Assembly (NCBI GenBank): GCA_900088475.1
Contig: FLMG01001379.1
Span: 28,182-92,181 of the forward strand
Direction of reading: 5' to 3'
Source: Hyphochytrium catenoides
Taxonomy: Eukaryota; Protista; Hyphochytriomycota
DNA length: 64,000 bases
How positions within the stretch are numbered: the stretch's first letter is position 1; the number at the start of each line of letters is the position of its first letter. The notes under the pieces were generated by a model, which made no database searches, was not told the DNA's origin, and saw only the letters and a program-made list of their open reading frames with translations. The translations under genes were made by a program, and so were the position numbers. Below are positions 5,250 to 46,459 of this stretch, in pieces.

Positions 5250-6395
5250 ATGGTAGAGACAAGGCATAACCCAGTAGCTCCGGAGCTTGGATCTCTCCGG
5301 ACGGTGGACATGTTCACTGCCATACAGATTAGGGGCTTGACCATCCGGAACCGGATCATGTTGAGCCCAATGTGCATGTACCATTGTGAAAACAAGGACG
5401 GAGTTGCATCTGACTTCCACGTCATGCACTACGGAACAAGGGCGCTGGGAGGGACTGGCATTGTATGCGTAGAGGCAACCGCAGTGGAACCAAAGGGCCG
5501 AATTTCTCCTCAAGATCTAGGGATTTGGGGTGACGAGCATGTAGAGCCTCTTAAGCGGGTCACTAGCATTATCAAGGAGAATGGCGCTGTCCCAGCCATT
5601 CAGCTAGCTCATGCAGGAAGAAAAGCAGCAACTTATAGGCCCTGGGGCGTAGGTACTAAGAGAGGGGCTATTCCTGAGGACGAGAGCTGGGAACTTGATG
5701 CTCCAAGTTCTATCGCATGGGGCACGCACTATCCTACCCCTCGTGAGCTAACTGTGGACGAGATCAAGGAGAAGGTCAATCTCTTCAAGCAAGCTGCAGA
5801 GAGAGCCCTAGCCGCCGGGTTCCAGATTATTGAGATTCATGGGGCCCACGGCTATCTCATCCACGAGTTCCTTTCGCCTGTCACCAACAAGCGGACGGAC
5901 AGCTATGGCGGGAGCTTCGAGAATCGTATAAGCTTTCTCTTGGAAGTCGTGGATGCCGTTAGGAGTGTATGGCCCGAAGATCTTCCTGTGTTCCTCCGTA
6001 TTTCAGCTGATGATTGGCATGAGAGTGGCTGGACGCCAGAAGACTCTGCTCGTCTAGCCCAAGTGGTAAGGGAACACGGCGTGGACCTTGTCGATTGCTC
6101 CGCAGGAGCTATCTCAAACGACGTCAAGTACCCAGCATCTCTCGGTCAGCAAGGCTATCAAATTTACCTCGCTGAGAAGGTGAAGAAGGAAGGCGGCGGT
6201 GTGCTTTCAGGCGCCGTAGGAGGCATCAAGGAGCCTGCATTTGCCGACAGCATTATAAAGGAGGGTAAAGCTGACATCGTGATTATTGGGCGGCAAATGC
6301 TTGCAGACCCATTCTGGCCTAATCATGCAGCTGTGGAGCTGAAGCAGAGAGAGCGGTTAGACTATGCCCCAGTCTACAGATGGGCGATCAAGTAA
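5250..6395 (+). CDS. NADH:flavin oxidoreductase / old yellow enzyme, YqjM(NamA)-like class
   Basis: Intronless 381 aa ORF with NRIMLSPMCMY, IQLAHAGRKA, EIHGAHGYLIHEFLSP, NKRTDSYGGSFENR and IGRQMLADPFWP. Confidence 0.95.
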   Translation: MVETRHNPVAPELGSLRTVDMFTAIQIRGLTIRNRIMLSPMCMYHCENKDGVASDFHVMHYGTRALGGTGIVCVEATAVEPKGRISPQDLGIWGDEHVEPLKRVTSIIKENGAVPAIQLAHAGRKAATYRPWGVGTKRGAIPEDESWELDAPSSIAWGTHYPTPRELTVDEIKEKVNLFKQAAERALAAGFQIIEIHGAHGYLIHEFLSPVTNKRTDSYGGSFENRISFLLEVVDAVRSVWPEDLPVFLRISADDWHESGWTPEDSARLAQVVREHGVDLVDCSAGAISNDVKYPASLGQQGYQIYLAEKVKKEGGGVLSGAVGGIKEPAFADSIIKEGKADIVIIGRQMLADPFWPNHAAVELKQRERLDYAPVYRWAIK

Positions 6396-22544: not shown

Positions 22545-23947
22545 ATGGAGAGCGCAGGAATCGACGTCACGGGCGCCGAAGACTGCGAGTCTTTTGAGCT
22601 TTGTCAGTCTGATGGCTTCAGCGAAGTCTTTTATGACACAAGAAACACAACGGTGACACCACTCTTTGAAGCTGGCAGCAGAGAAGAGGTAGAAAGGAGA
22701 GATAGCTTGAGTAAGTGGCATTCTATGCTTTAACGGTTCGGTTCCCATCCTTACTATTGTTTGTGTCTTTAGTTAGTAGCACCATTGATAGTGCCAAAGA
22801 GGCCCTGGGATCAGCCATGACGGATGAGCAGCTGGCTTCGCATGCCTCTAGAGTGAAACAGTTGTTGACGCAGATGCTATCTGGAGACAGATGTGTGAAG
22901 TTGGTGGCCACTGTCGTCTCTGGTCTGTTGATTGCCTCTAGGGCAATGCAGAATATCACCTTCTGCAAGGCAGCTGCCGCAAGTCTAAGACAGTCTGCTA
23001 CAGTCATCCGGCAGCCCATAGTGACTAACACTATGGCGAGATGCTTGGATGTTGCGGCTATAGCATTAGAGAACGAGCAGGTGACTACAAGTCTATCAAA
23101 TTCATTGGCTCAAACTGCGGCGACCCTAGAGAATGAGACTGTGGCAGCCACCGTGGAAGTCACTGCGGAATCGTTGGAGAAAGCCTTTGACAAAACAATG
23201 AAGATAATGAACCTTGCACTTCAGAACGAACGGCTCTCTGAGGTTGCCCACAAGATTTCTACCAATGAAGTGGTCAAGCAATCAGTCACAAAGACTGTTG
23301 AGATTATGGAGCAGGCTATGGAGACATCTGCTGTGAGGACGACTGTACAAACCGGGAAGTACATAGCGCGCAAGACTCTAAGCAACAGACATGTGCAAAC
23401 TGTTGGAAAGACTGCATTAGATGTAGCCTTCAGAGTAGCAGGAGACGAACGAGTCCAGACATTCGCTAGCAAGAATATAGAGTTTGCGGCAACGGCAGCG
23501 AGTGCAGTAGTCAACAATCAAGGCTTTAACAAGGCTTTCCGTCTAGGCTCGGATGTCGCGACGGCTGGAATGAGCGCAGTTGAATCTATCTGGGTCTATG
23601 CCTCGGCACCAGCAAGTCTGGTCCCGGCCTCTTTTCAGAAAAGAACACCTGAAAGACAGCTACTTCTCGACGTGGTTGACGAATGTGGGCTAAGCGGACA
23701 ATGTAGCGACCTCCATGCACTGTTAGCTGAGAGTGAGGCAGCCAGACGCGCTCTCATGACTTTGGCTCTACAAGCAAGAAAGGAACTTGAAAGCGAAAGA
23801 CATGCCCATGCCCGCACATTGGACTATGCCAACGAACTCTCTATAGCTCTTGCAGCAGGAGTTCGGAGACTCAACCCTGACATCCATCTTCACAAGAAGC
23901 AGACTGATATTGCTTTGGATGGTCGTCTGTTTGCCCCTGTTCACTAA
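22545..23947 (+). CDS. Uncharacterised Ala/Thr/Val-rich helical protein with acidic N-terminus (FFAT-like motif) and C-terminal coiled coil; 2 exons
   Basis: Exon 1 (22545-22710; MESAGIDV...SEVFYDTRN...RRDSL), then intron GTAAGT 22711 to AG 22772, joins in phase (A+TT = Ile) to the long ORF ending TAA 23947. Confidence 0.75.
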
Positions 23948-25029: not shown

Positions 25030-28000
25030 ATGGAGCCATCACCTGGGGGAGACATGCCCGATCTGGTGACTGAAGGGAGTGAAGGCAGGTCATCCACTCG
25101 GGGCGACTCAGACGCGACCGAGGCGGGGAGGGCTGGAAGGGGGATCTCGAAGGCCCAGGAACATCTTGACCACTGCCTTGCGGACTTCGTCGCATCGTGT
25201 AGCGATTATTACACCTTGCTGCATCAGCGAACCTCTTCAAGGGCTGGGTCAAAGTCCTTTGTCGACGTCGTGAGAACCAAGCTTCTGACCCTTTATGATG
25301 CCGTCACCCACGTGTGGCAGAGTGAGGTAAGCACCATTTTCGGAACCTCCTTGCGGCAGTATTATTAACAGGCGGAGTCTTCTCCTGGTAGGACGACAAT
25401 TGCTGCAGGAGCATCTTTGAGCAGAAGCTTCAGGACAGGCCTCTAGACACCATTCTTGGCATCCTTCTAACTACCTCATCTTTAGAGAAACCTTTGCATA
25501 CACCCGTAAGTTCATAACGATACAAGCAAGATAATCTCTGACTTTTGGATCTTCAGGCGCTGCATCTGCTCTCTGGGCTCGGGTATCACCCCTCCGTTAA
25601 GCTAATGCTGGCCCAGAATGTCTCAGTTTGGCAGTCGATCTTCAAGTTTCTAGCCAACGAGATAAATGATGCGTCCGCCTCCCAGATGGAGGTGGAAGCG
25701 TTTACCCTGATCAATGACCTGCTTGGTATCAAAGATGGACCGAACAAACTTATCTCCTGCTTTCGTTCGTTTCCTGAGGTCTTTCAGTATTGTGTGCGAC
25801 AGTCAACGTCTCAAAATCCAATTGTCAAGGCTGCAGTTAGTTGCATGCTGGAGAAGCTCGTTAACGACCCGGATGATGTAATCAGAAGTGGGAATGAGGT
25901 TTTACTGCTAGGTTTGGAAGTTTCCCAATTGATATCCATGGTGCAATGTGCTGTGCCCTTGGCCTGCTCTCGTGCCCTGGACGCCCTGAGTATCTTGCTC
26001 GATAGGGGTAAGGAGCAATTTCTGATGGGTGCTCGGCCCGCCAGGAGCTAACCTCTCAATTGTTAGGGCTTTTAAATGGTTCAAAGAGTATTGAAGCGCC
26101 AGTTCATTGGGGTTATCTTCTGTGTTCTTCAGTCGCATCCCGCCATTCCTGGAATAAGCGGCTGTTTGTGATGAATAAGGAGTATTTATTTAGGTGATTA
26201 CTGGCCCTGTCTCCCACTGACTTCTTTGTTGACATCATTTTAGCTACGTGCAACTGCTACTGTTCCCTAACCTCAATTATCTCGATTCAGTGACCCTTGC
26301 GTGCCGTAGGTATGGAGATGGTACATCTGCGGTGGCGAAAGAGAAATATTACCTCCCAAGCCTCACTCTGAAGATGACCGGTCGGTGATCTTTTAAGCTC
26401 TTGTTCCTCTTTCATGGAAGTCATCTCACTCAATCTTCCATATACTCTGCTCTAATCTACTAGATGGAAATACTACCATCCACCTTTGTCCTGAATTTAC
26501 GGCGGCCCCAGTCATTGCTCTTCGCTCTAACGGGGACGACTCTGGCATACTCTCCTGCTGGTATGAAGCGCTGGCAAACGCGATCACTGTTGGAACACCA
26601 GATCGGCTTGATCGTGGGCTCACACAGGGACGCGATATCAAGAGGCCTTCCGGCCCTCCTTATTTTGGAATGGATGATATGAAGTTTGTCTCCCTTTCGG
26701 ATATTAACCTAGAGGTTTTGATGGAACAGGTAGCATACGAAGAAGATCTACGGCATTTGCGCCTCGACTAACTGCTACTGACTCCACCTCCCTCTTCTCT
26801 CGTGTCTCGCATTTGTCCCTCCCCCGCTCTCCGCTTCTTTTCGCTTCTCTTACCTTAGCTGGCGAACTTATTGCAAATATCTAGAAGTCCAGCTGTCCTA
26901 GAATCAGCCACACGTGTACTTTCTATCATATCATCCTCTGGTAGCCAGAGCCATCGCGCAATCCTTCTGGCTTGCAGCATCCCACACCTAGCACTGCACC
27001 ATGTCCGGTCCCCAAACCAGAGAGTTCAGGAGTATGCTGCCAGGGCGCTTTCCAATCTTACAGACGAGTACGATCTAGAGCCAGGTAAAGTTGACGGTTT
27101 TTTGGGTTGTACGAACTCGCATCTCTCGTGAGTTCCAAAGCTACGTTATATTTGACTCGAGCGCGTGTTATTCACATTGTCCACCTCACCTGCTGACCTT
27201 CTGCCTTAATACATTGCTATATAATACTTCTTAGACGGTATGCTTAGCCGACGCCCTATCGTGAATATCGTTTCTAATACAGGCAAGAACAGCAAATCCC
27301 ATATCGACATCTGCCAGTTTTTGCTGGCAGCAGGAGCTATTGAAGGCGCCTGGATGGGCCTTCAATCTAGGCGAATTAAAACTGTGCTCTATTCGGCTAG
27401 GACCATAGTAAATCTGGAGTTGTTTCGAGCCAAACACCCCGAAGGACAAGAGCCGAGCTCAAATTCTACACGCACACCGTCCATGTCCTCCTCCCAATCC
27501 TTTTACTTTCTGAGGGGCCTCTTGAGCATAGCAGAGGAACACGCACTGACTGACGATGACGAAGTCGAGGTTGCGGTTGCTGTAGTAGAGCTCCTTCTGA
27601 TGAAGGCTGCCTTCAGCTCAGATAAGGAGGTTTGTGCTAAACCAAATTTGAAGTGATACAAAGCTAAATAGCGAAGGGCAGTGTGGGTTGATTATGAAGT
27701 CAGGAGCTTGAAGAGAACACCAATTTACATAGAAGAAGGGACGGGTAAAGGAAGCGACGGCGACAGAAGGAAAGTAGCTCTGAACGGAAAGCGAGTTATT
27801 GCAATGGGCGGAATGGTCTAGGGAAAACGAAGAGGGTCAAAAGGAATCAGTATCCATTCTTATAGAGCTTTTCCTTCCCGCCACTTTGTGACCATTAGGC
27901 TATCGTGAGAGAAGGCGGTGTGGATTACCTGTTGCATGTCTCCCGGCTGACTCCGCAAAGAAAGTTTCTCGGTGGCCTTCTAGACCTTCCGCTAAAGCGC

Positions 28001-31000
28001 CTGATTTCCATTCTATGTGAAGTTGGCAGTTCTGGTAAGTAAAGAAACTGTCCCGCATGCCCTCTTCCCTTCTTTTTTTTCCTTTTGGGATGCGCTAACG
28101 TAATACTCTTACAGCTTCCGGGAATGTCACTCTATCGCACCTGGAGCTCTTGATGTTTACGAAGCAGGCGGACTTAGTCAAGCTTTCTCTTTCTCTCGCC
28201 CTGCAGAAGCTAAGCGCCTCTTTGCCGTCGTCACTTATTCCCGATGCACAACCCTCACGCTTGTGGATGGACGCCACACCCTCTCTGCTTGACCCGTTAT
28301 CTCAGCCTGCTGTACCGGATGTGAGGAGAGCGATGGCGGATATCCTGCAAGAACTGTCAAAGGATGAAGAAGTGTCACTCAAATGCCCCCTCCCCAACAT
28401 CGTTAGTCAAATGACTATTCAAACCTCAATTTCAGGAGGTCCCACACTATCAAGCCCTCAATCGCCTCGTCATCGGCCTAGCTATCTTTCCCGGATCCTA
28501 CACACCATGGGGGAAGCCTTACGAAAGGGATATGCCGAATCGAGTACAGATATCCTGTTAAGATCTCTAGATTGCCTTTACCTGTTGTCATATTTTCCTG
28601 TCGCCTCGGCAAGGATGCGCCAGTTAGGTGCTCACTTGAGCCTATGTGAATGTTTGGCTGCACCCATTTCGGTTGTTCTACAACTGAAGGCAGCCAGGAT
28701 CTATCTTTACCTCCTGCTAATGTGTTCCAAGGTTACTGCTCTTGATCCTCAGTTAGAGGTAAGCTAAAGGAGTTAGATCCTGGTGGAGATCCACGTTGCC
28801 CTTCCTCGATATTCCCTCAGACTACTGGTGACTTAGACTAATCCCAAGCCTCAACTTGATGGGACGACTCATTCAACAAATACGCAGACTCTTCATGGCT
28901 AAGTCTTCTATGTCATTGCAGGTGACCCCTCTTCTCCTCTGCCTTCGCCGAACACGAGACCTGGATTGCGAGAAGGAGTCATCTTCTGTGGAACTGATGT
29001 TAACACTGTTATCAATCCTCACACTCTCTTCCCACTCAAATCCCAAACCGGAGTCAGGGCCAATTGGAGACTCCGTGGCGGCTGATATTGAAAACAACCG
29101 TCAATCAATCAGTGCTTGTGGGGGCTTAGCCGTCCTGTCCTCTTGTCTAGGTCATCCTCGGACACTGATCGTCACTCGCGCATGCGAGGCTTTGGCGTCT
29201 ATCTTTCGTTCAGAGTAAGCAACAGTTGACGGCTATACCTCAGACAAGGAGAATAAAGGGGAGGGGCATCGAATTGAACAAGTGTTTAGTAAGGCGTATG
29301 TACCTCGCGCACTCAGAACCCATTAAAGGTGAAGGGTCAGCAAGCAAGGGTACTATTGAGTATAAATCAACTAGGAAGGAACAGCTTATGCTTTGTCCGG
29401 TTAGCTGTTATTGATACCCTTTTCTCATCATCTCCCTTTTCAGGAGTCTAGCGGAGAGATACTTCTACAATAACATGGACGGAGTTACTTGCTTGGCGGG
29501 CTGCATGTTTCCCTCGGACTTACAAACCGAAAGCTCCTCTTTCTCGTCGGCGTTCTCGACCTCAGACTTGCTTCAGCTTGAGGCCTCCCATACCTTGAAG
29601 GAGCTTTGCAAGACGCAGGCAATCAAAGCGTCACTTCTTCGGCTTACGGTGGGACAAAAGGGGCCCCGACGCATGCTTGTGGAACTCTTGGCAGCCCTTT
29701 GTTCTCAGAGGGAGGCATTGGAGAAAGATGTAAGTGAAGGTTAGGTTTGTTCCCGTTCCGTATAGTTGATATATTAATATCGGCCGTCTCTGGCCCCATC
29801 TCAGCTGGAAGCACTTCTGGAGGCCATGGTGACTGATAACAACGGGGATCTTGACGTAGTCCCTCTAGAGTGCATTCTAGATGTTTCAGCCCTTAAGTCC
29901 TTACTTAGGGTCAGAAGTAAGTTATGATACTAAACTGAAGTGAAGGGGCAGTAATGGCAACCGACGGTTTGCCCCTAGTGAGAACGCGTTGGTTTGCCCC
30001 TAGTGAGAACGCCTTCTGCCCTTGTCTGGTGCAGGGAGATTCGGGTTTTGAAGCGTTCTCTACTAACAGCCAGTTCGTCCTTGCACCATTAGGTCCAATT
30101 GTGGTCAGAGCCGGACTGGCGGTGTTAGCATCAAGAGCGGAAAGAGGATGCCTTCCCGCTATATCCGCACTTCCCTTCCCTTCACTAAAAGCTCGACTGC
30201 TGATCCCGCAAACTGGTGTTGTTGGCATGGTGCGGTCGTGGACTAGAAAGTAGGTGTATAGGCTTCTCACTGTTCACTGTATTTGCTCCTGCGTTGGCGA
30301 GCATCTTGTACTCTGCCGCTTGTATTAATGCAGCTTTGGTCCTTTTCGTCTTTCTCTGGTGTGGTCCACCATCCTCCTGTGCTTGTAGGTTGTTTGTTTT
30401 GAGCGAAGAGTATTTATACCGATTTGATCTTAAGCCCGAACTCCTCGCGGAGGCTAGGGATAAAACGTGGCTTGGAGGATGCATTGTTAGACTTCAAGAG
30501 GTAACAAAACACCTCTCTCTACTGATGCGCGCTTTTGTCGTAACGTTTTCGGGCTAACTGGTTCTGGATGACCTTTTAACCTCGGCACCGTTGGTGTCAC
30601 GGTCATATCTGTGGACATGGGGTGCGCCCCCTATGGTAGCTCAAATGTCTACGTAATAACTTGTCATCCTGTGGAGTGGAAGCTCAAGTGAGATTGAAGG
30701 CTAACCATCTATTTCGGCGTAGGCTCAAGGCCGACGATGTGTAGAGCTGTTGGAAAAGGCTGACACCTCATCGCCAGTGATGGTTTTTACTGCAGAAAGG
30801 GGAGAGTCAGGAGACGGGCAGCTGCTGGATTGGTTCCAGGCTATAGCTAGTATATGCAGCAAGTACGGCAACAGCGATGGTGAGCTGCTACACATTAGTT
30901 TGTAACGCCTTATTCTCATCTACTCTCACTATGGCGATTGCATTCTGGTTTACCCTGTCTGTCTGCCATGTTTGTGGTCTCAGATCGTCTTTTACGAGAA

Positions 31001-34000
31001 CAGTATGTTCCGCTAACTTGCGGTGTTCCTAGGCTCCCCAATTCTCTCTGCCCTAGACGATGGTAGTCGTCACCGCTCCTTCTCCATTGCGTCCTCCTTC
31101 TCACAGCTCTCCAAGACCAGCGGCTTGTCGTCTTCATCACTGCGTCCCACCTTCTCCAGCTCTTCCTCCGCTCGACGCCAGACTTATGGATTAACTGCAC
31201 ATTCAGCTCTCTCGTGGAATGAGCTCGAGCCAGAGATATTTTTGCCACAGCTATTGGAGGTATATGTTGCCTGTTTTAAATCTGGCCTTTGCTACTTAGA
31301 TGGGGTACTTTCGCTTAATCCTCTCATGATCATCCCCCATCTGGTCCTCTCGCTATTGTCCCATCGTTCCATTGGATAGAACGTTGCGGCCGTAATGGGC
31401 CAACTCGAGTCCTTTGTATCGTTTGCTAGTTACGTTTTTCAAGCAATGTAAATAGTGACTTTCCTTTGGCAGCTTATGAGCAGATTTGACGAGGATATCG
31501 TCAAAGAACAGCTAGGGCGCCTTCTTTCTACCTTGGCCGCAAGTCTACATCAGCGAAAACGAGGTTCGAAAAGCGCACAGACTAAGACGGCGAGCTGTTC
31601 TCGTCACTTCTTTTATCTTCTTTTGATCTTGTAGATCGCCATTCTCGACTCCTGTGTTATGTTCCGCTACTTATAATAATCATTTGCAGTCCCATTTCCT
31701 ACTTTTGGCCTGCCACAAGGAAAGCTAATCCATGTCCCCTGACTGCATCGCGGACGCAGCTGTACTTTGCTCCCAAGAGTGCTTGCGAGGCTGCATCTCT
31801 TTGGTACGCTCGCGGAATCGTCGATGTGCAACGTATGGCGCGGCCATTCTTTGCAACCTCTTTGAGCCGCCATGTGCTGACACAATGGCAAATTTTTCAG
31901 GTAAGTCAGGAGTAGAAGCTACTGAGAGGGCAGTATTTCGGACTTTTGCGCTACTAAGCTGCATACTCTGGTTTTAACGATACCACTAAGACAGCAAGTC
32001 TTCGATAAATCGTGGCAGCCTCTCATACGCCATGTGTGCCTCTTCATAGATGCTCTCGCAACAGCTGGCATCACACATCGGCTTTCTCTCCTAGTCAAGG
32101 TCCGGACACCGGTCTCTACATATTACGCCTTGCGGGCCTTGTGGGCTATATGCCAGGTGAGATGACTCTCCAATCTCCTTGTAGTGCGGTCTCTCGATGG
32201 GCTGGCATCGCCTTTTTGGGCATTTGATGCATTGGGACCTAGCGGCCTGGGCGAGCAAATACAAGCGGCATCTGAGCACTATGTTGCAGTCCTCTTCCCG
32301 AAATTCGACCAGGGCTCTGGTAAGCACTGACGCTGAGTTCCTGAAAGCTGTCATCACTTCGCAATGGACCATCCAGCAACAAGTTGCGATAGGTAAACAT
32401 TAATTTGATGTTCAGCTACATGTCTGATCAGCTTTTGAGCTTCAATCTGACCCTATTGAGTTATGTTATCACGTATTATTCTATCTCCTGTTCCCTAAGA
32501 ACTATCAAACTAATGATCCCTCTTCCTTGTGTGCCATGGTACCCGTGCTCTATAGGGTATCAAGCTGTCGCCCTAATGAGGATAATGGCTTCAGACAGAA
32601 ATGCCAAGGCATTGTTAGCGACTAGAGGGGGCCTGGACTACCTTTTACACCTCACTTCCTTCCTATCATCCGAAGCAGTGACCCCAAGTGGCCGACGTTT
32701 TTCAATGTTCTCCTTGCTAGTCTCTGAGAGAAGCAAAGAGAGGGATAAGACTTCGGGCTTTTCTCCACCTTCGCCTTCAACGGAATTAGAGATGTTTGAT
32801 GTTGATACTCTGAGCGTAGACGATCAAGGTGAGGACTCACACTAAGTGGAAAAACGTGTGCAATGGACTCAGCTCGCCTTTGAGATAGCTCAATCGAGGT
32901 AGTGGTAGGATAACGTGGGGGTTGCAGAAGGGCAGCTCACTGTTGAGCTAACGTACATGCTATTATCCGCTTCCGTTATTCCTTTCTAGTCGGAGCAGTG
33001 GATGACTTGAACGAACTTATACGGAGAGCTGAGTTCACGCTGCGTACCCTCTTTGGGGAGGAGGATGAGGTTGTTGAGCTTCTGCCTCTTCCTCTTATAC
33101 TAAGACTTTGTGACGCCAAGGTTGGGGAAGTGGTCGTTCAGGCAACAAGAGCATTAGCGAAGCTGTGTGCATCTGATTCCGTCAGGGAGAGCAACACCGA
33201 GAATGAACAAGGAGGTGGACCTGGCGGAGATGGAGGATCCTTGCCAGATCAAACGGAAGGGGAGGAAGCTACGGGCCCCACGGACACACCCTTGCCGGAG
33301 GAGCTCGAAGAGCCATCATCTGAGGAGAAGAGAACTATACGGGAAGAAGCTGCCAAGCAAGGTGATCTATGGCGATTTTTCTGACATGCTCATAATAAGA
33401 GCTGCAGTACACCTTGTAATCAACGGTCTTTTATCCGATATTGGGCTTTACTACCTAAATCCGTTTCCCGAATGCTTTCCGTGCGAACTCTTGTTGCTCA
33501 CTGAGACTCTTCGTGTTCCAGGGTTTCATCGCTTAACAACATTGATTGCCGAATCTCGAACGGGCTGCTTTGGCAAATCTAGTGCTCGGGTTCTGTTCTT
33601 CTCCCTTCTCGCCGTCAGAAATCTCATGAAAGACTCAAAGATACGGGACGAGGTCACAAAGTACGACATGAGGGTGGCAAGACTGCACTACTCTTACCTT
33701 GGTTTACCTGCATATACTCTTACAAACCGGTGGTCGTCTACTGAAAGTGTATCTGTGGGACCAAAATCTTTTCGTTGTGACCTCTGTTAGTGTGAAAGAC
33801 GTAAGCGTCTAACTTGGTATAGTGCGGTGCAGACATCCGTACACTAACACTAGATCCCCTCATGCATTTCCTCATTCTTCCTTGCAGGAACTATGTCTTG
33901 GACGCCCTTCGCCAAGTGCTTGAGGATTCAACTGTGTCCTACTCCACACGTTCAGTAGCTAGTTCTGCGATCACGCTGTGCCTACTGTCTCCTTATAACT

Positions 34001-37000
34001 TTGACGAAGAGGTGCTTGAGCGCCTTCTTGACAAGGCGCTGGGGCTGCTACGGGACGGAGAAATGATTCTTCAAAAAAGGTGGGAACGAATGTGGGCAAG
34101 GGTCAGCTAGGCTGGAATGGAAATTCTCCTCGCATACTTGTTGTGTCTACTCCCATTCTTCGTTGGCCTCATTTCGGTTACCCTTTGCTGCAAGGCCCTT
34201 TTCCCTTTTTCACTCAGCTCATTTGAACGACATGTGTCTATGTCCGAGGTTGCTTTTTATGTACAACTTTCGTTCTTGCCTACCCACCGTACCAGTAAGA
34301 GGACACCCTGTGTGTGTCATCTTCAAGCATGACTTCCCCTTCCCTGTTTTGGCCCTCCCGGTTACCAGTCTGGGTCTAACAGCTACCTCTTGCCTTCTAT
34401 TTTCTTTTAGAGTTGTCCCTCCTCTCCGGATATTTTGTATAAGTTTGGCTGGTTGCCTAGCGCAGCTCTGCCGCTTATCCGAGCGCCACCGACACCAGTT
34501 GGTTAGCAGGGATGTCCTAGAGGTTGTCAACGCATGTTTTGACTTGAAGGACCAGGAGTTATCGGCCGCCTGTTGCAAAGTAAGTCGCTTGTAAAAATAC
34601 AAATCTGGTAGAACGGATACCTGCGCTCTGGTGTGCGATTTATTGCGCGACCACACTTAATAACATCTCGTTGGTGTACCACAGATCTTAGTCTCCCTCT
34701 GGGCGTCTTCGCCTTTGAAGTCACTCATTATCTCGCACTTCTCCTCTGGCCTCGAAAGAATAGTAAGACCTCTGGGATACTTCTCATCGCTTGAGGCTTT
34801 CGCATCATAATCGAAAAGTACATGTTGTGGTCCGTCCTCTCATTCTCGTCCTCAGCATTTCTGATCTGCCTATCAAGTCATGCTTTTATCCTTCAGCGCC
34901 GCTAGCTATCCTATTGATTTTTCCAGATTGAGGCAAGGGACGCGAGTGTATTGCACTTCCGCTGCCTCTTACTGCTCTGCTTGTAAGCTCACAGTTCGTC
35001 TTGCTTGGAGGTTTCGCTCCTGGGCTCTGACAAGCCACATGTGCTGGTGGCTGCCTGTCGAGTTATCCAAGGATTTTGTTATGACAAGCAGTCTAAGCTT
35101 AGGGTGCTTAACATGAATTTTTTGCTCCCAAAGGTTAGATCTCTTAGCGAGGAGCAGCTACTCTATCATAACAGTCTTTCGTTCCCCATGGTAATGTCAT
35201 TTTCTAATCCTTGCCCTTTGCCCTAGCCTTCCCTTCTCCTCGCGTTTCATCCCATGGCCTTTGCTGTTCGATTCGCCTCGCAATTGACATGACGCACATT
35301 ATCTGATAGTAATGCTTTGTTTGGCTACGTTTCGGGGCACTTAGAATTCATCTGGACCATCTTCGGATAGCCCACACGGCCTTTCAACATCACCATCCTC
35401 CTCCTCGACGTCAGGAGGGGGTATACTAATTATCTGTGCGGAAAGGCTAGTTCTTCTCTCTACTTTGGAAGACCGAGTTAGGGAAGTGGCCAGCCAAGTG
35501 CTGCTGGCGATAGTGTCCGACAGTCCAGACTGTAGTGGTAATCTCTTATTTTTTAGTGCCGTAGCATGCCTACCCTCAACGTCTGCTCGCTTCCGGATAT
35601 TCTGCTCATTCTCATTGAGTTACCTCGACCTCCACTGATTTTGGTTTCAATACAGCTGAAGAGCTGATTGGAGCCCATTTGACGATCGATCAGCTCCTTA
35701 TCTTGTCCCGCGCATCGGTCCCGCTAGTGGTCCGACGCGTGCTTGAAGTGCTGGGCAGGATGGTAGAGAGGGGGGCCATGTCTGGAGCGGCCCTGCTCCC
35801 ATTTCCGGCAAAACTGGGTAAGCTCATATACTTTTGTATTTTTGGCTGCTACTTGTGGGGCCTGTATACTTCCGGCTAAACCCATTGCTAACTCTTGCAT
35901 ACTTTTGTGTAGTTTAGTATATCTGTAATCGCTTTGCTCTTTCTTGATTATGAGTGTGCACTGTCTGGCAATTGATGTCCGTTCTCGATCTGGTCGATCT
36001 AGATAAGATCTCGTCTTCTATTATGCCTCCGAAGCAGCTGTGTCCTTCTTCCCACTCTTGTGTCTCATATTCTCACCCGGTAACTTCAGGATGGCTTGAG
36101 AGCGCCCGGCCCAATACTAACAGCTCTATGATGAGAATATCCAAGTCTGCGTGGAACAGAAGATGGTTTGTGCTGTGTGAAGGTAAGCTTCACCTGATTT
36201 CATGTGTGTGTCGCTCCATTCCTCTGTGCTGTTCCCATGCAGCTTTTCATCCTTTGGACCTATGCTAACCCTGGAACTTCCCCAGAATATCTGTACCGCT
36301 ACGCTCTTCGACCCCCGGGTTTAGCGGAATCTAAAGAAAAGTGGTATCTCAAAAGTATGTCACATCGGATTCCCACTCTTCCTCCACCCTTGTCAGCATT
36401 ATGTGGTGCGCCCCACCGGCGGTCTTTAGGAGCGATTTAACCTTTCGGCGTAGATGCTCATTATCACTTTATGCGTTCTTGTACGTGCCTTCTCACAAAC
36501 CATGACTCTTGATCAGCTTGTGAAGTGAGCCTAATTGAAGATACCAAGTCTGGGGGCAAAATAATCGAGCTAACTTGTGGGCTGGAGCGCACCTACATGC
36601 GCATTTGTTCTCTCGAAGAGAATGCGGAGGATTGGTACAATGCCATATCGGCGTATGCGACTGCTACGGCGCCGTCTTCGTCAGGTAACACCACCACAGC
36701 AGCAGCTCTGGGCGTAACTTAGGGAGCTTTATCTACTGCTGTTGTCCAGCGGTCGTCACGACTTCTCCCCCATTCTTGTTGGTATAGCCGCTTCCTCGTC
36801 TTATGCTTATACCCTTTCCTAGATCTGATGGCGTTTCTTATCGAAAAAAATCCTACGAGACGTACTTATCTTGCTTTTATTCATTTCTCATTCCTCTCCA
36901 GGTTCCCAGCTATCAGAAGTGGGGGATTCTGAGGTAGCCAGTGAAGGTATCGGTGTCTCTGCTAATGCGTTCACGATTATGGGTGAGATGATGCATAGCT

Positions 37001-40000
37001 CCGACCAAGATGGGGTAAATGCGGGTGGTGGAGGAAAGAGTGTCTCGGAAAGGATAACCGGGAAAATATCGGGCACTCTCCGCCGTCCTCTGGGCTCGTC
37101 CAAGCCTCCACCGGCTTCTCTTTACGGATTACCTCGTCAGAGCTACGCTCTCTGGTCCGACTTGAAGCTTGAGGAAAATCTTCAGCACTTTCTTCAGGTC
37201 GCTGGCTCTTCAGACGATGAAGGGATAGCCATCTCGGGTAAGGTATATCTTATTTATCACCTATTCCTCTTCGCACCTGCGTCTTTCCTGTAGTCGCTGC
37301 TGTGCTCCTTCTACCTGATTATTCCATCCTAACGCCGGGACCCTCCTACCTACTTACTTACGTAAAGCTGGTCGTATTTTGGCGGCTCTGAGCAAACATG
37401 GAAGTGAGAGGAAGCAACGGCTCCTCTCAACTTTGGACGTAGTGGCTACTGCCGTGGTACTTACCAAGTCTAAGATTCAGCCCGCAGCCCGGTATGGAGC
37501 AGCTGTCCTTGCAGGTATGAGTTAGGAATGTCATTTGACAGGACTAAGACCATGGGCTACGGGCAGCAAGGTACGCACAACGGACTCGCTCTCACTCTCC
37601 TCATGTTTAATGTGACAGGCCTCACTCAAAACCCACCGCAGCAGCAGTCCCAACACCCTGAACTGAAGGCCTTGACTAAGCCTGCCCTACAGATGCTGCA
37701 ACTCGGGGCAGGAAGTAGTCTGGTCCAGTTGCTACGTTCTCAGGACCCACAGGCTATCTATTTTGCTTCTTTAGCGCTTTATCAGGTACTACCTCTATAG
37801 CCGCTTTGTAGTAACCTTATAGCTTGGGAAGCACATAGGCCCCTCTGCGAAGGTCGTGTATCGCTTTCTGGCATAACATCTGCCATTAACATATTTCTTC
37901 TAACAATCACGGTCGACCCCTCTCAGGTGGCAGCTCAGCGCGACGAGAACTCGTCCCAGCTCCTTGATCTGGGTATTGTGGACGCTTATGTTACGATCAA
38001 CCTCTCCGCCTTTGAGCGCAACATTAGGAACGCCATCTATCACATATCCTGTCAGCTGATTCTCTGTTTTGTCACTAACGTTGACCAGAAAATTAGAATT
38101 TTTAAACAGGGTAAGAGCACGCCCTCTGCATCTGTATAGAATGCAATTCCCACCCTTCCAGCAATCTGTTATAACAGCCTACCATGGTTTCTCAGTGCAA
38201 CCCTTTTTGGACTGCACTCTGCTGCTGCCAGTCTAAAATACTTTCAGCTGCAGGAGCTGGAGAATTGTCTCCTTGTATCTCTTATTCTGTATTGCAGTCC
38301 TAACATGATGTTGATCGGACCGTGCTGCTACAATGCAGGAGGAGTCGAATATTTGTTCTCTATTTATATGGGTCAGGAAGTTAGCAAAGAGCTCTTTGCG
38401 GAGGTAGCAATGACTTGTCGTTTCGTGTCCCTTTGAATCATCTCTTTCTACTTGACTGGTGACCCATTATTCTGCCTCAGGATATTGTCGTTCATTTGCT
38501 CTCTTTCGGTGGTCTGACAAATTTACTTTGACCTTGGATTAGATCGAGGTAATACTCTCAGCACTCTTTGGGACGAATGATGGTGCTGTCTCTATCCTAC
38601 CGATCCGTTCAATTATTCTGCTGGCGGGCTCCAACATTATACCAGCAAAGGTGCAGGCTGCTCATGCCTTTAGCACCATAGCGGCAGAATACCCGTATAA
38701 TAGCACAGACAAAACAGAGATGATCAGCTTCGTAATGTGCCTCATGGCGCTCCTCGAGGAGGGCTACGGAGAGGTATCTCAGAGTCGTGAAAGTACCTCT
38801 TCTTCTTCAACCTCCTCCGGTGTACTGAGAAAGCGAGGGGCGTTATCTCCTTCACAAGCCCATGAAGTGATTCAGTGCGGTTTGGAGGCACTGAAGCAAC
38901 TAAACCAGGCAGCTGCCAACCGACAACTTGTCGGCGAAGCAATCCCAACTTTAGTGACACTAGTTTCTTCGAAGTATATTCCCCTAGGTACAAATAGCCC
39001 TTGCCCGTTATGGTGCTATGCTCCTCGTTTTTGCCGTCTCTATGCGAAATGCCCTTCTTAACGTTTGGACCAGCCATGACTCCCAGACACTAATAATCTT
39101 TCAGTTTTACTATGCACTGTCTGACCACTGTCACTAACTACCCGTTAGCATAGCAACCACTAACGTGTACATCCGCACCTTATGATCGTTCATGATGGTG
39201 TAAATCTTCCTTTATAACCCCAGAAACACGCCTTGGTGCTGTGCGTCTACTGCTGGACTTACATGAGGGTGTGGATCACGAGGGGTTGCTAGCGGCAGAC
39301 AATGGAGCTGCTACTATCTTTTTATGTTTCCAGAACCAGTTGTCTGCGCCAGGAAGAGAAAGAGAAAAAGAGGAAGAAAATGCTTTCATCGAAGCGCTGG
39401 CGAAGTTGCTCGGGATCTGCTCTAAGTTTGTGAATGGGCGGCAGAGTATCGCCGTCAATAACGGTGTCGCAGAAACTTTTCAGTATCTTCAGTCCAAGAA
39501 TTTATCGGCTGCATGTCAGGTGAGGGAAGGGAGCTGAGTTGTAACCTTTTTACATGCTTTCCGAATTTAATCTGGCTTTGGAAAGCAACAAGGACCCTTC
39601 TAGAATGGTGGTCTCTATGACTGTAGAGTACCGATAGCGTTACAAGTGGCACTTTGGATAACGTTTTGCGGGGCCAAATAGTGACTCCTGAGAGGAAGGA
39701 CAACCGGCGTAACGTGATGCACTCTAAAACCGTCCTGTTGACTGGCAGGTGGACCTCCTCGTGCTTCTGGGTAATGTTCTCGCTGTGCCAGAGTTTGCTC
39801 GAGACTACTTTCAGCCAGTAAAGAAGAAAGCCATCCACTTCCTATGTAGAGGAATGCAGTCGGCCACTGTTACGCTGCCGCTTCAGCGTCAAATGCTTCA
39901 TTGCATAAAGCAGTTGGTGGAGTTTGAATGGATTAGGGTAAATGAGCACGGATTGGTGGCTCCTGATAATTCCGTTCTCAATTCTCAGACACCCCATGCT

Positions 40001-42240
40001 TGTTCGATATCTAGGATGACTTCCTTCGTGTGGAACGCCTGAAATGTTTTGATGGTCTACTGAAGAGTGATGGCCCCCTGGCAGAGCTAGCAATAGCTGT
40101 ACTTCGTCTCATTCTGTCTACCCCAACTGCTGCTAACGCAAGCGGACCGCTAAAAACAACTATAGTGGAGTTAGAAGGGAAGATGGCTGAGGTAGAAATT
40201 CTGTCTTATGACTTAGTCTCAAGCTCGCACTCCATTTCCTCTATTCATCTTCTCGCTGCTGCCAGGTATACTTTGAATACTCCATAGGTTCCCTCTTCCC
40301 ATTAAATCGTACGGAAGAGGTCATGAGCTTTCATTTTGTAACTTTCTTGTCACTACCTTACCCTTGTTCACAGGTAACTAAAGCGATAGAGAAGCATGAA
40401 AGTAAGCTGCAGCATACTCGAAGTGAGCCATCTATTGTCGGACAACCAGGAGAGCGCAGAGAGCGATCAAGTCAGGATGAGGGCCCCACTATTCCCATTT
40501 CCTCTGGTGGACGAGAAAGCGTTGTGCTGGGCGAGGAGATCGACTTTCTGCTAAGGTTCACTCTCACTGTCCTACGTCATATTTTTAGCGGTTTGGGTTC
40601 CTAAAGTTTTTTATGGAGTCACTCGATTGATTGCATACTCGCCTTACTCCATCTCTTCAAATCAATGCCAGTCGTTTCTTCCGGTACTTGATAAAGAGCT
40701 GATACGTATGTTACCCTCTTGCTCCTGTGCAGTCGGAACTTAGTCTTGTTCGAGCCTTGGAGGGTACCGTTTTTTGGTGGACTATCGATCGTTTCTTCGC
40801 ACCTAGGTCTTTCTCTAGCCTGGGTGCTCGTGGCCTATTGCCTGTGGACATATTACCGCAGTAGGCTTTTTTCAGAGAGACTGTCGACGACGAGCTCTTT
40901 GTGTTGCATTGTGCTTCTGGCCTTGGCGTATGTCCTATGCTGGAGTTACTTTTTCTCGCTGGGTGTGCTTGGCATTACTTACTTCCTATGGACAATTGAC
41001 CGTCAAGGGAATGCGGAGATAAAACCCGTCCTTACCGTTAGGGAGGTTTCAGAAGACAAGGTACGTCGTTTTTTGTTTCGAGGTGGTGAGGCTTTAGATC
41101 TCTGCCTGGATTTGAGTCCAAAGGGATGGTAGTTGCCGATGAGCGAATGTTCGTGTCACCTATAGCGTCGGTTACCTTTCAGTCGGATGGGCTGAGCCTG
41201 AGGTCAAGAGGTCAAGGGCATTTAGTTACGATTAACTCCTTGTACACAGCTCTCTACCCTCACTCAACTGGATTGGCTTAATGCCACTGTGGACGCAGTT
41301 TGGCCTTGCCTTAACAAAGCCACCATGGATACAATCATGACTTCCGTCCAGCCGCTACTAGACAGCTCTCTACCCTACGGTCCTTTGAAGGCAATTCACC
41401 TAGATTGCGTTGATTTCGGAACCGTGCCTCCTCGCATAACGGGAGTGAAAGCGCACCGGGTCGACGCGACGGGCAGCTGCCTCGACATAGACCTTAAATA
41501 TTCTGGGAAGCCCAACATTGTCCTGAGCGTCCAACTTCTTGGTCCAATGGGAACCATGAAGGTGCAAGTGGCAGTTAAAACACTTCAATTGGCTGGGTGC
41601 TTAAGACTCCAATTCAAGGCGCTTGTTCCCGTTTGGTGAGTAGTCCCATACCGGAAGAGGAGATGGAGCGTGCATCGAGATCATTGTTCTGGGTACAGAG
41701 ATGTGGAAAATTCATGAGACGAAAGATCACCCACAGCGCCAGTGCGAAGAGTAGCGAAAAGAAAGCTTCAAATGGGAGGAAGCAGTCGCTCGGTGTTCAC
41801 TGATGAAAATGGAAGACAGCAAAGCATGGGGTGACAGGAAGAAGTCAATGTCATATAATTGTGAATGGACTCATCATTCCCCTCCCCTTTGCAGGCCTCT
41901 ATTCTCTGCCATTGGGGTTTCCTTTACAAGCAAACCGCACCTTGTTTTCAGCGTCAATACACTCAAGATGGATGTTATGAACGTCCCTCTGCTGTCGAAC
42001 AAGCTACAGGAGCTTCTTATGCGCGCCATCACGGAGAATTTCGTGCTTCCCCACGTTCTATTAGCACCTGATTGGCGGCCCGAAATGGTGGAATACATGA
42101 AAAACATGGGCATTCCAGATCTGCCAGACGGATGGTTTGCCCGATATCCAGCCTTAGCTTCAGAGCTGATCCAAGCTGCGGCTCTACCAGCCCCTGCCTC
42201 CACCCCATCGCATGGCACAGAAAGAGACAATGAGGGATAG
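25030..42240 (+). CDS. Giant multi-exon protein: ARM/HEAT repeats with three PH domains, hydrophobic TM region and C-terminal SMP (TULIP) lipid-transfer domain
   Basis: ARM-type exons (e.g. NRQSISACGGLAVLSSCLGHPRTLIVTRACEALASIF). PH domains near 26070-26590, 30090-30870 and 36070-36660. Junction CTA AG|GT...CAG|T CGG links the ARM part to the TM exon at 40733. SMP: LDWLNATVDAVWP...DFGTVPPRITGVK...LDIDLKYSG...LRLQFKALVPVWPLFSAIGVSFTSKP...DVMNVPLLS...FVLP. Stop TAG at 42240. I checked many but not all junctions. Confidence 0.8.
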
Positions 42241-42477: not shown

Positions 42478-45400
42478 CTAATCCCGATGTTGACCACTCT
42501 TAAGCTCTCGTAGAACCTTCTGGACTTCACTAATCCGAAGATCGTTGGTATCATAGTTGTCCAAGTAGGCAGCCTCGATTGTCGTCACATCTTCGTTTAG
42601 CCGCTCATGGATGTCCCCAGCGTAAAAAGAGGCCCGGCTCTGCCGTCGGAAGCTGGAATGACGGTAAAGAAACCAAGGGAAAGAGTCTTAGTCCTGGTAA
42701 AGTGATCTCCAGGGAGGAAACCATAGGGGTATGACATCCAACGGAAAACCCTACCACAAAGGGAGGGAGTGGGAGGAAAGGACTAGACCCTATCGCAAGT
42801 GAAATAAGAATCACAATCCAATAAAACTGCTTACCTCGCTGAGAGCCGATCTCGCTCTTTGTGCATCTCTGGGTCTTCTGAGGATGAGTTCTCAATAATC
42901 TTCTTCATAATGGCTACCATCTGTTTGGTGCTCTTGGCGGTACCTGGAAGATGGGTATCGTAAGTGCCTAGTTGCTTGTTTGGTACTCTTCTTTTGTGCT
43001 ACTTTCATGACTATAACCTTTTAACTAACTTGCAGGTGTAAGTCAGAAACTCTTAGAGGAACTTCTCGTCAGTCTAACATTGTTGACAACCCTTTGCAGA
43101 CTAGCCAACTAAGTTCCTCCCCGTTGCTGGTGGGGGCCAACGTCTTTGTTTGTTTCGCCGTGTATATACATATATATACATACAGAAATGCTCAATGGAA
43201 GTGTACTACAGGGCTTTACCCCTTACCAAGTCAGGCAACTTGCCAATAGCTCATGTTCTTACCTGAGATTGTTCCATTCGTGATGCTACTTTTGAACAAA
43301 GTTGACTTGGTAAAGTGGACGCTAACTTCAACGGCTATGCTGCACGCCGTACCGTCGGCACTATTTGTAAATATGTTTGCAGTTTCAATCTGTCGCAGCG
43401 AAGACAATCCGCAGTTGTAGGAAATGGGTTTAGGTGGAGAAGGGGAGAGAAAACGCGTCTTGTAGGAGGGTATAGTGCGAGCTAAGGCGTTCCACTTGCC
43501 GAAAAGTAGCTTCCATACGGGATATCTTTCGCGTATGTCTTTGTCCTACAAACCAGCTGACCACCGTCCGCTGGAGGCAGAGGTAGGAGGCTTAGATTCG
43601 GTAGTGAGGAGATAGTAAGAGTGACACAAAACGGGATGATAGGAAACTCTCAAGAGACGAGCGACCTCTAATGACAAAGGCTACAAGACACGCTGGTCAC
43701 GCATTGGGCAAGACCTACCAGTGAAGAAAGCGTTCTGATATTCTTCAACTCGACTTGTTTTGACCCCTGGGACTCCACTCACAGGCATGGCGAATGTCTG
43801 CTTCCTGGTGCAAACGACGGTTGTGGTCAAACCTATCCTTGATCTATCTTACTCTCTCTCAAACCGTGCTGTCTCGTTACTAATCTGTCCCATTATGTCG
43901 AAGTTGTTCTCTTTGGGCGGGCGACGAATAATTGGCCGGCACGACATTGCCTTGACGTACCTCACTTTACCCAATTCTGGGTGCCTATACCAGCAAGTCA
44001 CGTCCACATCTGCGTTTCCATCTTCCTCATGACGCTCCATGTTGAAGTCGGAGCTCTCTGCATAGAACAGTTCCCAGACCTTCTTCACGCTAGAGAGTAG
44101 TTCAGGTAAGTTCGATGAGCGGCGGCCATTAGATTGAATGGTTATCGGCGAGGAAGATGTTGGTAAGAACCCAAAAGCTAGAAGATGAAGCTGACGGTGT
44201 TCTGCAGATAATCCTCCATACTTACTTGACCCCTAGTTCGTCCGAATAGATCTCTTTGAAGTCTGAGTCTTTCGATTCGAAGAACCCCGGCTTCACCTCG
44301 TCCAACCAGGGACACGTTGGTGTCGGAGGTCTTAGACTTTTGACAACTTCTTGCTCCGAGGCCCCCCGATCTCTTTGAGCTGGCACAAGTCTCTGGTGTG
44401 TTTAGAAAGTATTTGGGTCAATAGAGGGTGACAAATGCGTGCAGTAGGCAGCTATCAAACGAATTAACCGGAAGGCTGAAGCTCTACCTACCGATCGGGA
44501 GCTAGCTCTAGATCTGGTGCTTCCAGCTAGGGGCACTGGGGTGCCATACACGGATGAATGGAGGGAAAGGCCACTTCTTGTGGAATAGTAACTTTGTTCA
44601 GAATTTGTTGGGGAGGAGGACCCGTCAAAGGGCTCAGGACTTGGGACTGTAGGCAAACGCGAAGCAAAAGCGGATTACTTTCTCTCCTAGCTCTAGTGCC
44701 CTGTTGGATTTTTAAGGCTGTCATATCGTGTCTGCCTCTAACAATACAGCAACTCTAACCTCGTGACTCTCATCCCCATCTTCAAGTGCTTTTGGACTGC
44801 AAACTTACTCTCCTCATTCTTGTCAGCGAAACGCGAGCAGTAGAATCTCTGCGCCTTGTTGATAGCGACTGGGTCCTTATGCCCTCGATACAGCTTCAAT
44901 CCTTCCCCTTTTCTGACGACCCAAGCTCCCTTAAACCAGTTTGCCTGGGGTAAATAAATGCTGATGCAGTAGTCTGCTGCTAGATTTTCCACGGGAACCG
45001 AGTAAATTGCTAGGCTCTCCCAGTTGCCGCATTTCTTAGCTTTTACCTACGTTTAAACAGTAGACGGTTATAAGTAGGGTTAATGGCAGGGCCATGATCG
45101 AACATCACTAAAGGCGAATACTTAGAGGAAACCTTGGAGTATTAGGCGGAAGCACTCTGACGATCAGAAAGAGACAACCGGGACGCGAATGGAGAAGTGT
45201 TGACACAATCTTAGATAGATACCGACTTGAAGGGAGCTTCCCATTCCGGTCTGTCCCAGGTAACGGCCGGTCTTAACACTTCGAATGCCTAGTCGACCCT
45301 TATATCGCACAAAGTGAAACAGACAAGATTCATCTGGCTGTTGTATCAGCTTCGCACTACGCCCCTGTACGGATAGAAACTTCCCAGTCTCACAGTCCTA

Positions 45401-46396
45401 TGAAGGGAAAGCGAAACCGAAGTGTGAACATCCTTATCGCAACTCAGGGACCTCTCCTTCAACAAAGATCTCCTTTAACAATATTGTAAGCGCAGGGGAG
45501 ATTACCTTAAATATGTACTTCTCTCCTGTGTGCCCAATGGAGTCTAACCGCTCTACCAAAGTCGAATGCGAGGTTGGTAGCGTTTTTACTCTTGTTGCCT
45601 CACCAAAGGAAGAGATTGAGTCCGTGAGGTCTGCAGGAAAACTGTTATGAGAAAAGGGAGCTTGTGCCCAACTTCTCTCTGCAACCCAAGGTGCGTCATC
45701 TCCTCTTTCAAGAATTATCCTTTTCCCCTGTACCGTCAGACCACCTTGATCTCCTTTTTACTTACCTTCGCTATCGCTCTCCGCAGTCTGCAGATAATCC
45801 CTAAGTCTTGCTGCATCCAGGGCCTTGATCAGCGTTATCAAGAGCTTGAGGATAAGCCCCAGTTAGGGCCAGAGATACCGCAATTCTTCTCATGAATTAT
45901 TTGAAAAAATTTGGTACATTGACATCATCCCCACTGAAAGGCTGAAGGCAGTCTAAGGTATTCGAGAGGAGAAAAGAACCGGATGGCCGTGACCATCACT
46001 TAGGTCACTAATTGTAGGAGAACATCGGTTGCTATGTCGAGAGACTGAGGCTATGCCGAGAGAATGAGGCTATGCTGTGAAGAAGCTACCTTATCGTTGG
46101 CTGTCTGCATAGATATTGGCTTTCGGCAGATGTCCAGAACACGAACCTTCAGCTCATTCGTCTCTTCATAAGAGATGGACCCAGACGCGCTGAGTTGGCC
46201 AATCTGTCGCAGAATGTATACCGCTTCTGACACATCCCTTTAACAAGTAGGAAGGGTTAGGAGCGCAATGTAACGCTTAGGTCTTCAAATGTCAAGGACT
46301 CACATGTCGTCTGTTGAATCAGCTGTGTCATAGCTACTGAGCTTGGCTGAGAGAGGGCCCGACGAGTTCAAAGCTACCCTTTCACTTCTCCCACGA
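42478..46396 (-). CDS. Fascin-like beta-trefoil + VASt (StARkin, LAM/Aster-type) sterol-transfer domain protein; 5' end lost at/behind the N-gap
   Basis: Spliced trefoil-like part: KYIFKDCETGKFLSVQG...LFHFVRYKGRLGIRSVKTGRYLGQTGMGSSLQVKAKKCGNWESL. VASt: ELGVNVKKVWELFY...HEEDGNADVDVTCW...KTSRVEEYQ...KDIPYGSYFSIE...CSIAVEVSVHFTKSTLFKSSI. Stop TAG at 42478-42480. Confidence 0.8.
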
Positions 46397-46459
46397 NNNN
46401 NNNNNNNNNNNNNNNNNNNNNNNNNNNNNNNNNNNNNNNNNNNNNNNNNNNNNNNNNNN
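46397..46459. other. Assembly gap (63 N)
   Basis: Run of n; interrupts the 5' part of the VASt gene. Confidence 1.

Follow-up and report, generated by a model that had tools for sequence, protein, structure and literature searches.

Proteins with an SMP domain are listed in reviews as E-Syt/Tcb, ERMES, TMEM24, PDZD8, and Tex2/Nvj2, and the plant set consists of SYT (including SYT6), CLB1, NTMC2T5/T6, and TEX2. The gene described here lies in a stretch of 64,000 nucleotides from Hyphochytrium catenoides (contig FLMG01001379.1, positions 28,182 to 92,181), hereafter called the window. It occupies 25030..42240 on the + strand and is predicted to encode a giant protein, in which a long arm with armadillo (ARM) repeats and three PH domains is followed by two transmembrane (TM) helices and a C-terminal SMP domain. 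To our knowledge, the SMP domain is cytosolic in every characterized SMP protein, and these proteins place the anchor first and the targeting modules after or around the SMP domain.

The predicted protein is similar to E-Syt, tricalbin, and plant SYT proteins in its E-Syt-type SMP domain and in the anchor, which is connected immediately upstream through a short linker. Unlike them, it has no C2 domain, and its anchor is preceded by ~3,050 residues; the N-terminal arm would have to provide its targeting. Because the C2 domains are absent and the anchor is not N-terminal, the protein is not a member of the E-Syt family.

TEX2 and Nvj2 also have a long region before two TM helices, a PH domain, and a C-terminal SMP domain. 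However, the N-terminus of TEX2 is disordered, and its single PH domain follows the TM helices and precedes the SMP domain, whereas in the window protein a predicted ARM-type solenoid and all three PH domains come ahead of the TM helices. Unlike TEX2/Nvj2, its SMP domain fits best the E-Syt-type Pfam models SMP_LBD and SMP_MUG190-like. The protein is not TEX2, because its TM helices are followed by the SMP domain with no PH domain in between. It has an E-Syt-type SMP domain in a TEX2-like terminal position, and TEX2/Nvj2 is the nearest described layout. PDZD8 and TMEM24/C2CD2L resemble it in that the SMP domain is membrane-anchored and other domains recruit it to a partner organelle, but their order is different: an N-terminal TM helix, the SMP domain, and C-terminal targeting modules (PDZ-C1-CC and C2 plus basic tail, respectively).

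No paper joining an SMP domain with armadillo repeats was found in the ~8.4 million papers searched; the sole co-mention was an unrelated meeting summary. An earlier note on this DNA had stated that no such layout is known. This holds for the literature searched, but databases already contain an unrecognized orthologue from Cymbomonas tetramitiformis, and TEX2 is a partial precedent.

The window is eukaryotic and intron-rich, with a GC content of ~49%. Between 25.0 and 42.2 kb, the + strand contains a dense run of stop-free pieces of 50 to 220 codons, and the minus strand has no comparable series. The gene model was built by a dynamic-programming search for chains of GT-AG exons, followed by curation by hand. 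The region can be read as an in-frame chain with GT-AG introns only. The curated model has 44 exons and 3,418 amino acids (aa), and the automatic variants of the chain have 43 to 51 exons and 3,410 to 3,596 aa; the size first given, roughly 3000 aa, was ~400 too low. The start is the ATG at 25030, the first Met downstream of an in-frame stop, and the stop is the TAG at 42238-42240. The median intron is 160 nucleotides long, and GTAAG is the most frequent donor. The sizes of the exons and introns, and the years of the DNA runs that contain the window (2011, two runs of one sample, and 2017), are in keeping with the published H. catenoides project (PMC5795050), which also provides a 454 cDNA assembly and MAKER models. 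Exon borders are dependable for the three PH modules, the TM exon, and the SMP domain, which were checked against homologues; the other borders are approximate.

The predicted order is an N-terminal helical segment, PH1, ~800 aa of ARM type, PH2, ~900 aa, PH3, ~800 aa, two helices, a linker of ~30 aa, the SMP domain, and a tail of ~55 aa. The earlier note had described an ARM/PH arm, a hydrophobic anchor, and an E-Syt-type SMP domain ending at a stop with no C2 domain, and this architecture is borne out by Pfam, hydropathy, and the comparison of spliced modules.

It is conceivable that the locus is decayed or mis-assembled, that some of the exons are chance open frames, and that the true product is much shorter. 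The codon bias of the gene is weak, several predicted exons are pyrimidine-rich or hydrophobic, the exon count varies from 43 to 51 across models, and the region 25030-29400 is covered by no relative. Against this, open frames of 100 to 220 codons follow one another on one strand over 17 kb, and the three PH modules and the SMP domain are intact over two to three splice junctions each, with correct phases. Moreover, independent soil metagenomes contain fragments 95–99% identical to the window. A decayed or mis-assembled locus is thus very improbable.

Membrane anchor, SMP domain, and SMP clade

The exon at 40733-41060 encodes two hydrophobic stretches of ~30 residues each (Kyte-Doolittle of at least 1.6). 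Helix 1 (40764..40856, ~30 aa) carries the motif G-L-S-L-A-W, which is common to Cymbomonas and a metagenomic relative. Helix 2 (40899..40997, ~33 aa) reaches the hydropathy maximum of 2.33. The helices start at approximately residue 3,077 of ~3,418, and the SMP domain begins ~30 residues after helix 2. The intron between them (41061-41249) is in phase 0 and connects "...SEDK" to the start of the SMP domain.

The first SMP exon (41250..41635) alone matches SMP_LBD with 27.2 bits (cutoff 27) over profile positions 5-117, and it also matches SMP_MUG190-like. The second SMP exon (41895..42075), which ends in A-P-D-W, matches SMP_MUG190-like over profile positions 164-219. The intron between the two exons (41636-41894) splits a codon as TG|G, and splicing restores a Trp that the family alignment shows to be conserved, in the motif LVP-x-W-PLFS. 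The sole sequence match of the SMP domain in PDB is E-Syt2 (4P42; E = 4.7e-5). The spliced domain matches the SMP domain of the Cymbomonas protein KAK3277195 (P0001) with E = 1.8e-54, and the SMP_LBD match of P0001 itself spans positions 3-178 of 180. By its Pfam profile matches, the window domain is an SMP domain with E-Syt-type sequence.

The C-terminal tail (42076..42240) extends ~55 aa beyond the SMP domain to the stop. The earlier proposal that no C2 domain follows was upheld by the genomic sequence: Pfam detected no C2 domain, either in the + strand pieces of the gene or in the 3.6 kb that follow it. Downstream C2 exons as a continuation of the gene are excluded, because the gene that follows lies convergently on the minus strand. 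This neighbor (42481..46400) ends ~240 nucleotides past the TAG stop. Its minus-strand pieces match VASt (E = 0.002) and Fascin (E = 6e-4), and the + strand pieces of the same region have no match.

Searched exhaustively with HMMER, the first SMP exon matched 410 proteins, none of which is a self-match. The best match is P0001, with 50% identity. In a quick maximum-likelihood tree of SMP domains, the window sequence groups with two Cymbomonas genes and three metagenomic fragments, with a support of 94 in the Shimodaira-Hasegawa-like approximate likelihood ratio test (SH-aLRT). The members besides the window are P0001, P0003, P0005, P0004/P0151, and P0007, and the SMP domain is C-terminal in all of them. 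The sister protein of the clade has two C2 domains. The tree thus places the window SMP domain in a small C2-less clade nested among C2-bearing E-Syt-like proteins. P0001, P0003, and P0005 share an A-P-[DN]-W tail, and P0001 and the contig of P0005 contain the helix motif G-x-S-[LV]-A-W.

The TULIP fold was modeled for one member of the clade, P0003. AlphaFold2 with the family alignment gave a predicted local distance difference test (pLDDT) score above 85 over most of the SMP domain of P0003. In Foldseek, the best match of this model was the SMP domain of E-Syt2 (1e-11), followed by Mmm1, Mdm12, and TMEM24.

Among the matches to the first SMP exon, there is also a protein of different composition. 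P0072, a 997-aa protein from a public library, combines, according to Pfam, an anoctamin (scramblase/channel) domain with an SMP domain at the C-terminus.

The Cymbomonas counterpart and the junction between arm and anchor

KAK3277195 from C. tetramitiformis is 1,202 aa long and has its SMP domain at the extreme C-terminus. Its gene begins 91 nucleotides from the end of the contig, and the protein opens with the final helix of a PH domain. A word-based search found a second Cymbomonas protein, KAK3276268 (P0159; 1,061 aa), which extends the sequence upstream by an ARM region and a PH domain. The two proteins overlap over 619 aa with 99.5% identity. Both are hypothetical proteins, named "SMP-LTD domain-containing" (KAK3277195) and "PH domain-containing" (KAK3276268) in UniProt. 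Judging from this overlap, KAK3276268.1 and KAK3277195.1 are halves of one gene on the overlapping contigs LGRX02006218 and LGRX02006657, with each model cut by a contig end or mis-terminated.

The merged Cymbomonas protein, of at least 1,634 aa, has the order ARM, PH, ARM, two helices, and SMP domain, followed by the stop. With E = 9e-4 and 20.2 bits against a cutoff of 25.1, its PH domain falls short of the Pfam threshold; the match spans positions 11-101 of the 105 in the profile. All seven of its sequence matches in PDB are PH domains, including those of centaurin-gamma, cytohesins, GRP1, and SKAP55, with the best at 0.0029. Its arm matches ARM_ARMC5 (3.4e-10), under the cutoff of that model. 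A single Cymbomonas exon encodes the TM region together with the beginning of the SMP domain.

Five collinear phmmer blocks connect the window model and the merged Cymbomonas protein. Outside the SMP domain, the most similar segment is the ARM segment at 37358..37549 (tblastn, 38% identity, E = 6e-6), which lies within these collinear matches. The two proteins share the order of their parts, SMP domains that are 46–50% identical, the G-x-S-L-A-W helix motif, the A-P-D-W tail, and the absence of C2 domains. Unlike the window protein, the Cymbomonas protein shows only one PH domain, and its gene is distributed over two contigs with a 5′ end that is cut or mis-started. The window protein has ~1,100 extra residues with PH3 and ~1,000 upstream residues with PH1. 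The 8 kb upstream of the Cymbomonas model yielded no additional exons. Based on collinearity and sequence similarity, the Cymbomonas gene is a previously unrecognized orthologue of the window gene.

The earlier note had joined the ARM-PH part and the TM-SMP part at 40555|40733. This exact junction is supported; it is by far the best in-frame GT-AG pair there, with 12.8 bits versus 6.4 bits for the next-best in-frame pair of donor and acceptor. The intron from the arm to the TM-SMP part is 177 nucleotides long (40556..40732), with the donor GTTCAC and the acceptor ...CTCCTGTGCAG, and the codon split as AG+T at the junction encodes Ser. It is quite probable that the ARM-PH and TM-SMP parts belong to one gene. 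Fusion is favored because the Cymbomonas gene models join the same parts, collinear with the window.

The alternative is that two or more genes lie on the same strand, with at least one ARM-PH protein that terminates near 40602, followed by a small TM-SMP protein similar to P0151 or P0003, and that the join is an artefact of frame chaining. Several observations weigh against the reading as one very large protein or fit this alternative. With 4.4 bits against a median of 8.1, the donor at 40556 ranks second-weakest among the 43. The intron has an in-frame stop 47 nucleotides from its start, and a dynamic-programming chain can be pushed through nearly any sequence. The alignment across the junction to a single Cymbomonas exon is no better than those of shuffled sequences. 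Among the listed runs matching the locus, there is no RNA run, the matches being DNA runs and soil metagenomes, and the four runs aligned to the locus gave short genomic DNA pieces with no spliced joints. Some TM-SMP relatives look stand-alone (P0151, 324 aa; P0003, 368 aa), although they may be fragments. The ~1,100 aa holding PH3 are either absent from Cymbomonas or omitted by its model. The genome is also compact, with ~240 nucleotides to the end of the convergent gene, and short intergenic gaps are thus possible.

On the other side, the TM exon contains no Met codon, and the only alternative in-phase start would be a first exon of 5 nucleotides with a poor donor. Two genes would leave ~130 nucleotides for a terminator, a promoter, and two untranslated regions. 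The Cymbomonas models, with the same order on one strand, are annotated as fused. Separate genes are therefore rather unlikely. The junction strings were not found in JGI metagenome contigs, but a control junction within the SMP domain was likewise absent from them, and the comparison is uninformative.

The N-terminal arm and its possible function

The arm starts with an N-terminal helical segment (25030..26007), which covers ~250 aa before PH1 and was recognized by its open frames; it has no Pfam match. Downstream of PH1, two Pfam stretches of armadillo repeats are present in 26859..27128, with the best at 26994-27065, and they score above the threshold (Arm, 33.2 bits, E = 5e-8; cutoff 20.6). 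In 28832-29215, another armadillo repeat (29096..29203) scores 18.7 bits (E = 1.8e-3), just short of the same cutoff. The largest exon (28117..28758, 214 aa) has no Pfam match, and it is probably an alpha-solenoid. Its nearest named Atlas clusters are mostly solenoids of the ARM/HEAT type (RICTOR_N, V-ATPase_H_N, CFAP69 ARM, Arm, KAP, and UNC45-central), at lead-level scores. AlphaFold2 with this single sequence gave an unusable model (pLDDT 37). Most of the arm would be an ARM solenoid, but the larger part of it has no Pfam match in the exon-level scan, which speaks against this assignment.

Each of the three PH modules extends over three exons. PH1 (26067..26600) is encoded by exons 26067-26193, 26244-26380, and 26464-26600 or beyond, with the splice phases checked by hand, and it carries an insertion of ~20 residues after beta2. 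PH2 (30179..30879) is encoded by an exon ending at 30249 and by exons 30389-30500 and 30723-30879. PH3 (36080..36713) is encoded by exons 36003-36182, 36286-36354, and 36517-36713, and its splicing was curated so that the beta3-beta4 segment fits PH2 residue by residue. Because each domain is distributed over three exons, exon-level Pfam catches one fragment only; the one PH fragment detected is in PH3 (E = 0.035). Once spliced in phase, the three modules can be aligned with one another over ~100 residues, with pairwise phmmer scores of 16 to 39 bits. PH2 is the module nearest to the Cymbomonas PH domain (phmmer, 31 bits), and it is part of the collinear block that matches Cymbomonas residues 97-418. 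The prediction of three PH domains, as proposed at first, is based on the homology of the modules to one another and to the Cymbomonas domain, which itself is below the Pfam cutoff. A local hidden Markov model built from four PH modules missed P0035, the sole Pfam-verified PH domain among the fetched proteins; PH domains are too divergent for such a test.

The PH domains start at approximately residues 263, 1169, and 2167, and the TM helices at ~3077, with a period of ~900–1,000 residues. The segments flanking the PH modules show weak collinear similarity by phmmer and hhalign (phmmer independent E = 6e-5 to 0.03, Z = 100). The last ~75 aa of the N-terminal segment are also weakly similar to the stretch directly before PH3. 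These similarities suggest an ancient triplication of a PH+ARM unit as the origin of the arm. A BLAST comparison of the model with itself detected no large internal repeats.

It is fairly likely that the gene encodes one very large integral-membrane lipid-transfer protein, in which the arm would replace the C2 domains as the targeting part. The two membrane helices (or two hairpins) would place the arm and the SMP domain on one side, presumably cytosolic. The SMP domain would be held ~30 residues from its own membrane, as in E-Syt, most likely that of the endoplasmic reticulum, and its hydrophobic groove would take up and shuttle glycerolipids. The site of action would be set by the ~3,000-residue arm instead of C2 domains. 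The three PH domains and the surfaces of the solenoid may bind the partner membrane or proteins and thereby hold the SMP domain at the contact site. Such a protein would resemble an E-Syt shuttle, but with the targeting part N-terminal to the anchor instead of C-terminal to the SMP domain.

A single gene could also encode an arm that serves as a protein scaffold or regulator, for example, by binding the cytoskeleton, a GTPase, or a kinase and with PH domains that bind proteins, while the SMP domain acts at a contact made by others or within one organelle. ARM solenoids are classic protein-binding surfaces, and many PH domains do not bind lipids. All three PH modules keep a basic pair ahead of beta2 in their beta1-beta2 segments (KR, RK, and RR), but none has the beta1 lysine of the canonical phosphoinositide motif; phosphoinositide binding is thus not readable from the PH sequences. 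PDZD8 and Tex2 are recruited through the protein adaptors Rab7 and TMEM55. The regular spacing of the three PH domains, however, fits multi-point membrane contact at least equally well, and nothing speaks directly against a scaffold. A scaffold arm is considered unlikely, although it is a serious alternative.

A broader proposal can be made tentatively, although it is doubtful as a whole. The window gene and its Cymbomonas orthologue may represent an undescribed, anciently shared family of giant contact-site proteins in a prasinophyte alga and an unrelated soil protist. Its members would consist of a repeated unit of one PH domain and an ~800-aa ARM solenoid, two helices, and a C-terminal SMP domain without C2. 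The PH-studded arm, perhaps generated by PH-ARM triplication, would be a long multi-point tether or spacer setting the site and the distance of the shuttle. If the host is not a green alga, the family would span distant eukaryotic groups. If the main reading of a single large membrane protein holds, an SMP shuttle would be coupled to a very different and very long targeting device, and it would offer a natural test case for the effects of tether length and multi-site membrane reading on lipid transfer. Two Cymbomonas hypothetical proteins are flagged here as halves of one such gene. The small SMP clade can be recognized by its G-L-S-L-A-W helix motif and A-P-D-W tail, with which protist transcriptomes can be searched.

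Other features of the window

An open reading frame (ORF) of 410 codons is present at 22715-23947 on the + strand. It has no Pfam match, is rich in Thr/Val/Ala repeats, and resembles amphipathic helices. An upstream extension of the giant gene into this ORF was considered and rejected; its stop is 1.1 kb upstream of the start codon at 25030, its sequence is unrelated, and it is a separate gene. A run of N, representing an assembly gap, is located at ~46370-46440, in or beside the convergent gene with the VASt and fascin-like matches.

Two further ORFs are found near the start of the window, both on the + strand. The one at 2304-3917 encodes a calcineurin-like phosphoesterase of 537 aa, whose nearest named relatives are from oomycetes (Phytophthora, Aphanomyces, and Lagenidium) with ~30% identity, a hint at a possible stramenopile host other than the oomycetes sequenced so far. 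The other, at 5250-6395, is intronless and encodes an Old Yellow Enzyme of 381 aa (Oxidored_FMN, E = 3e-82). The named relatives of this enzyme are NamA-type proteins from bacteria (52–57% identity), and one Logan fragment is 96% identical. In an intron-rich contig, this intronless ORF is a candidate for horizontal transfer.

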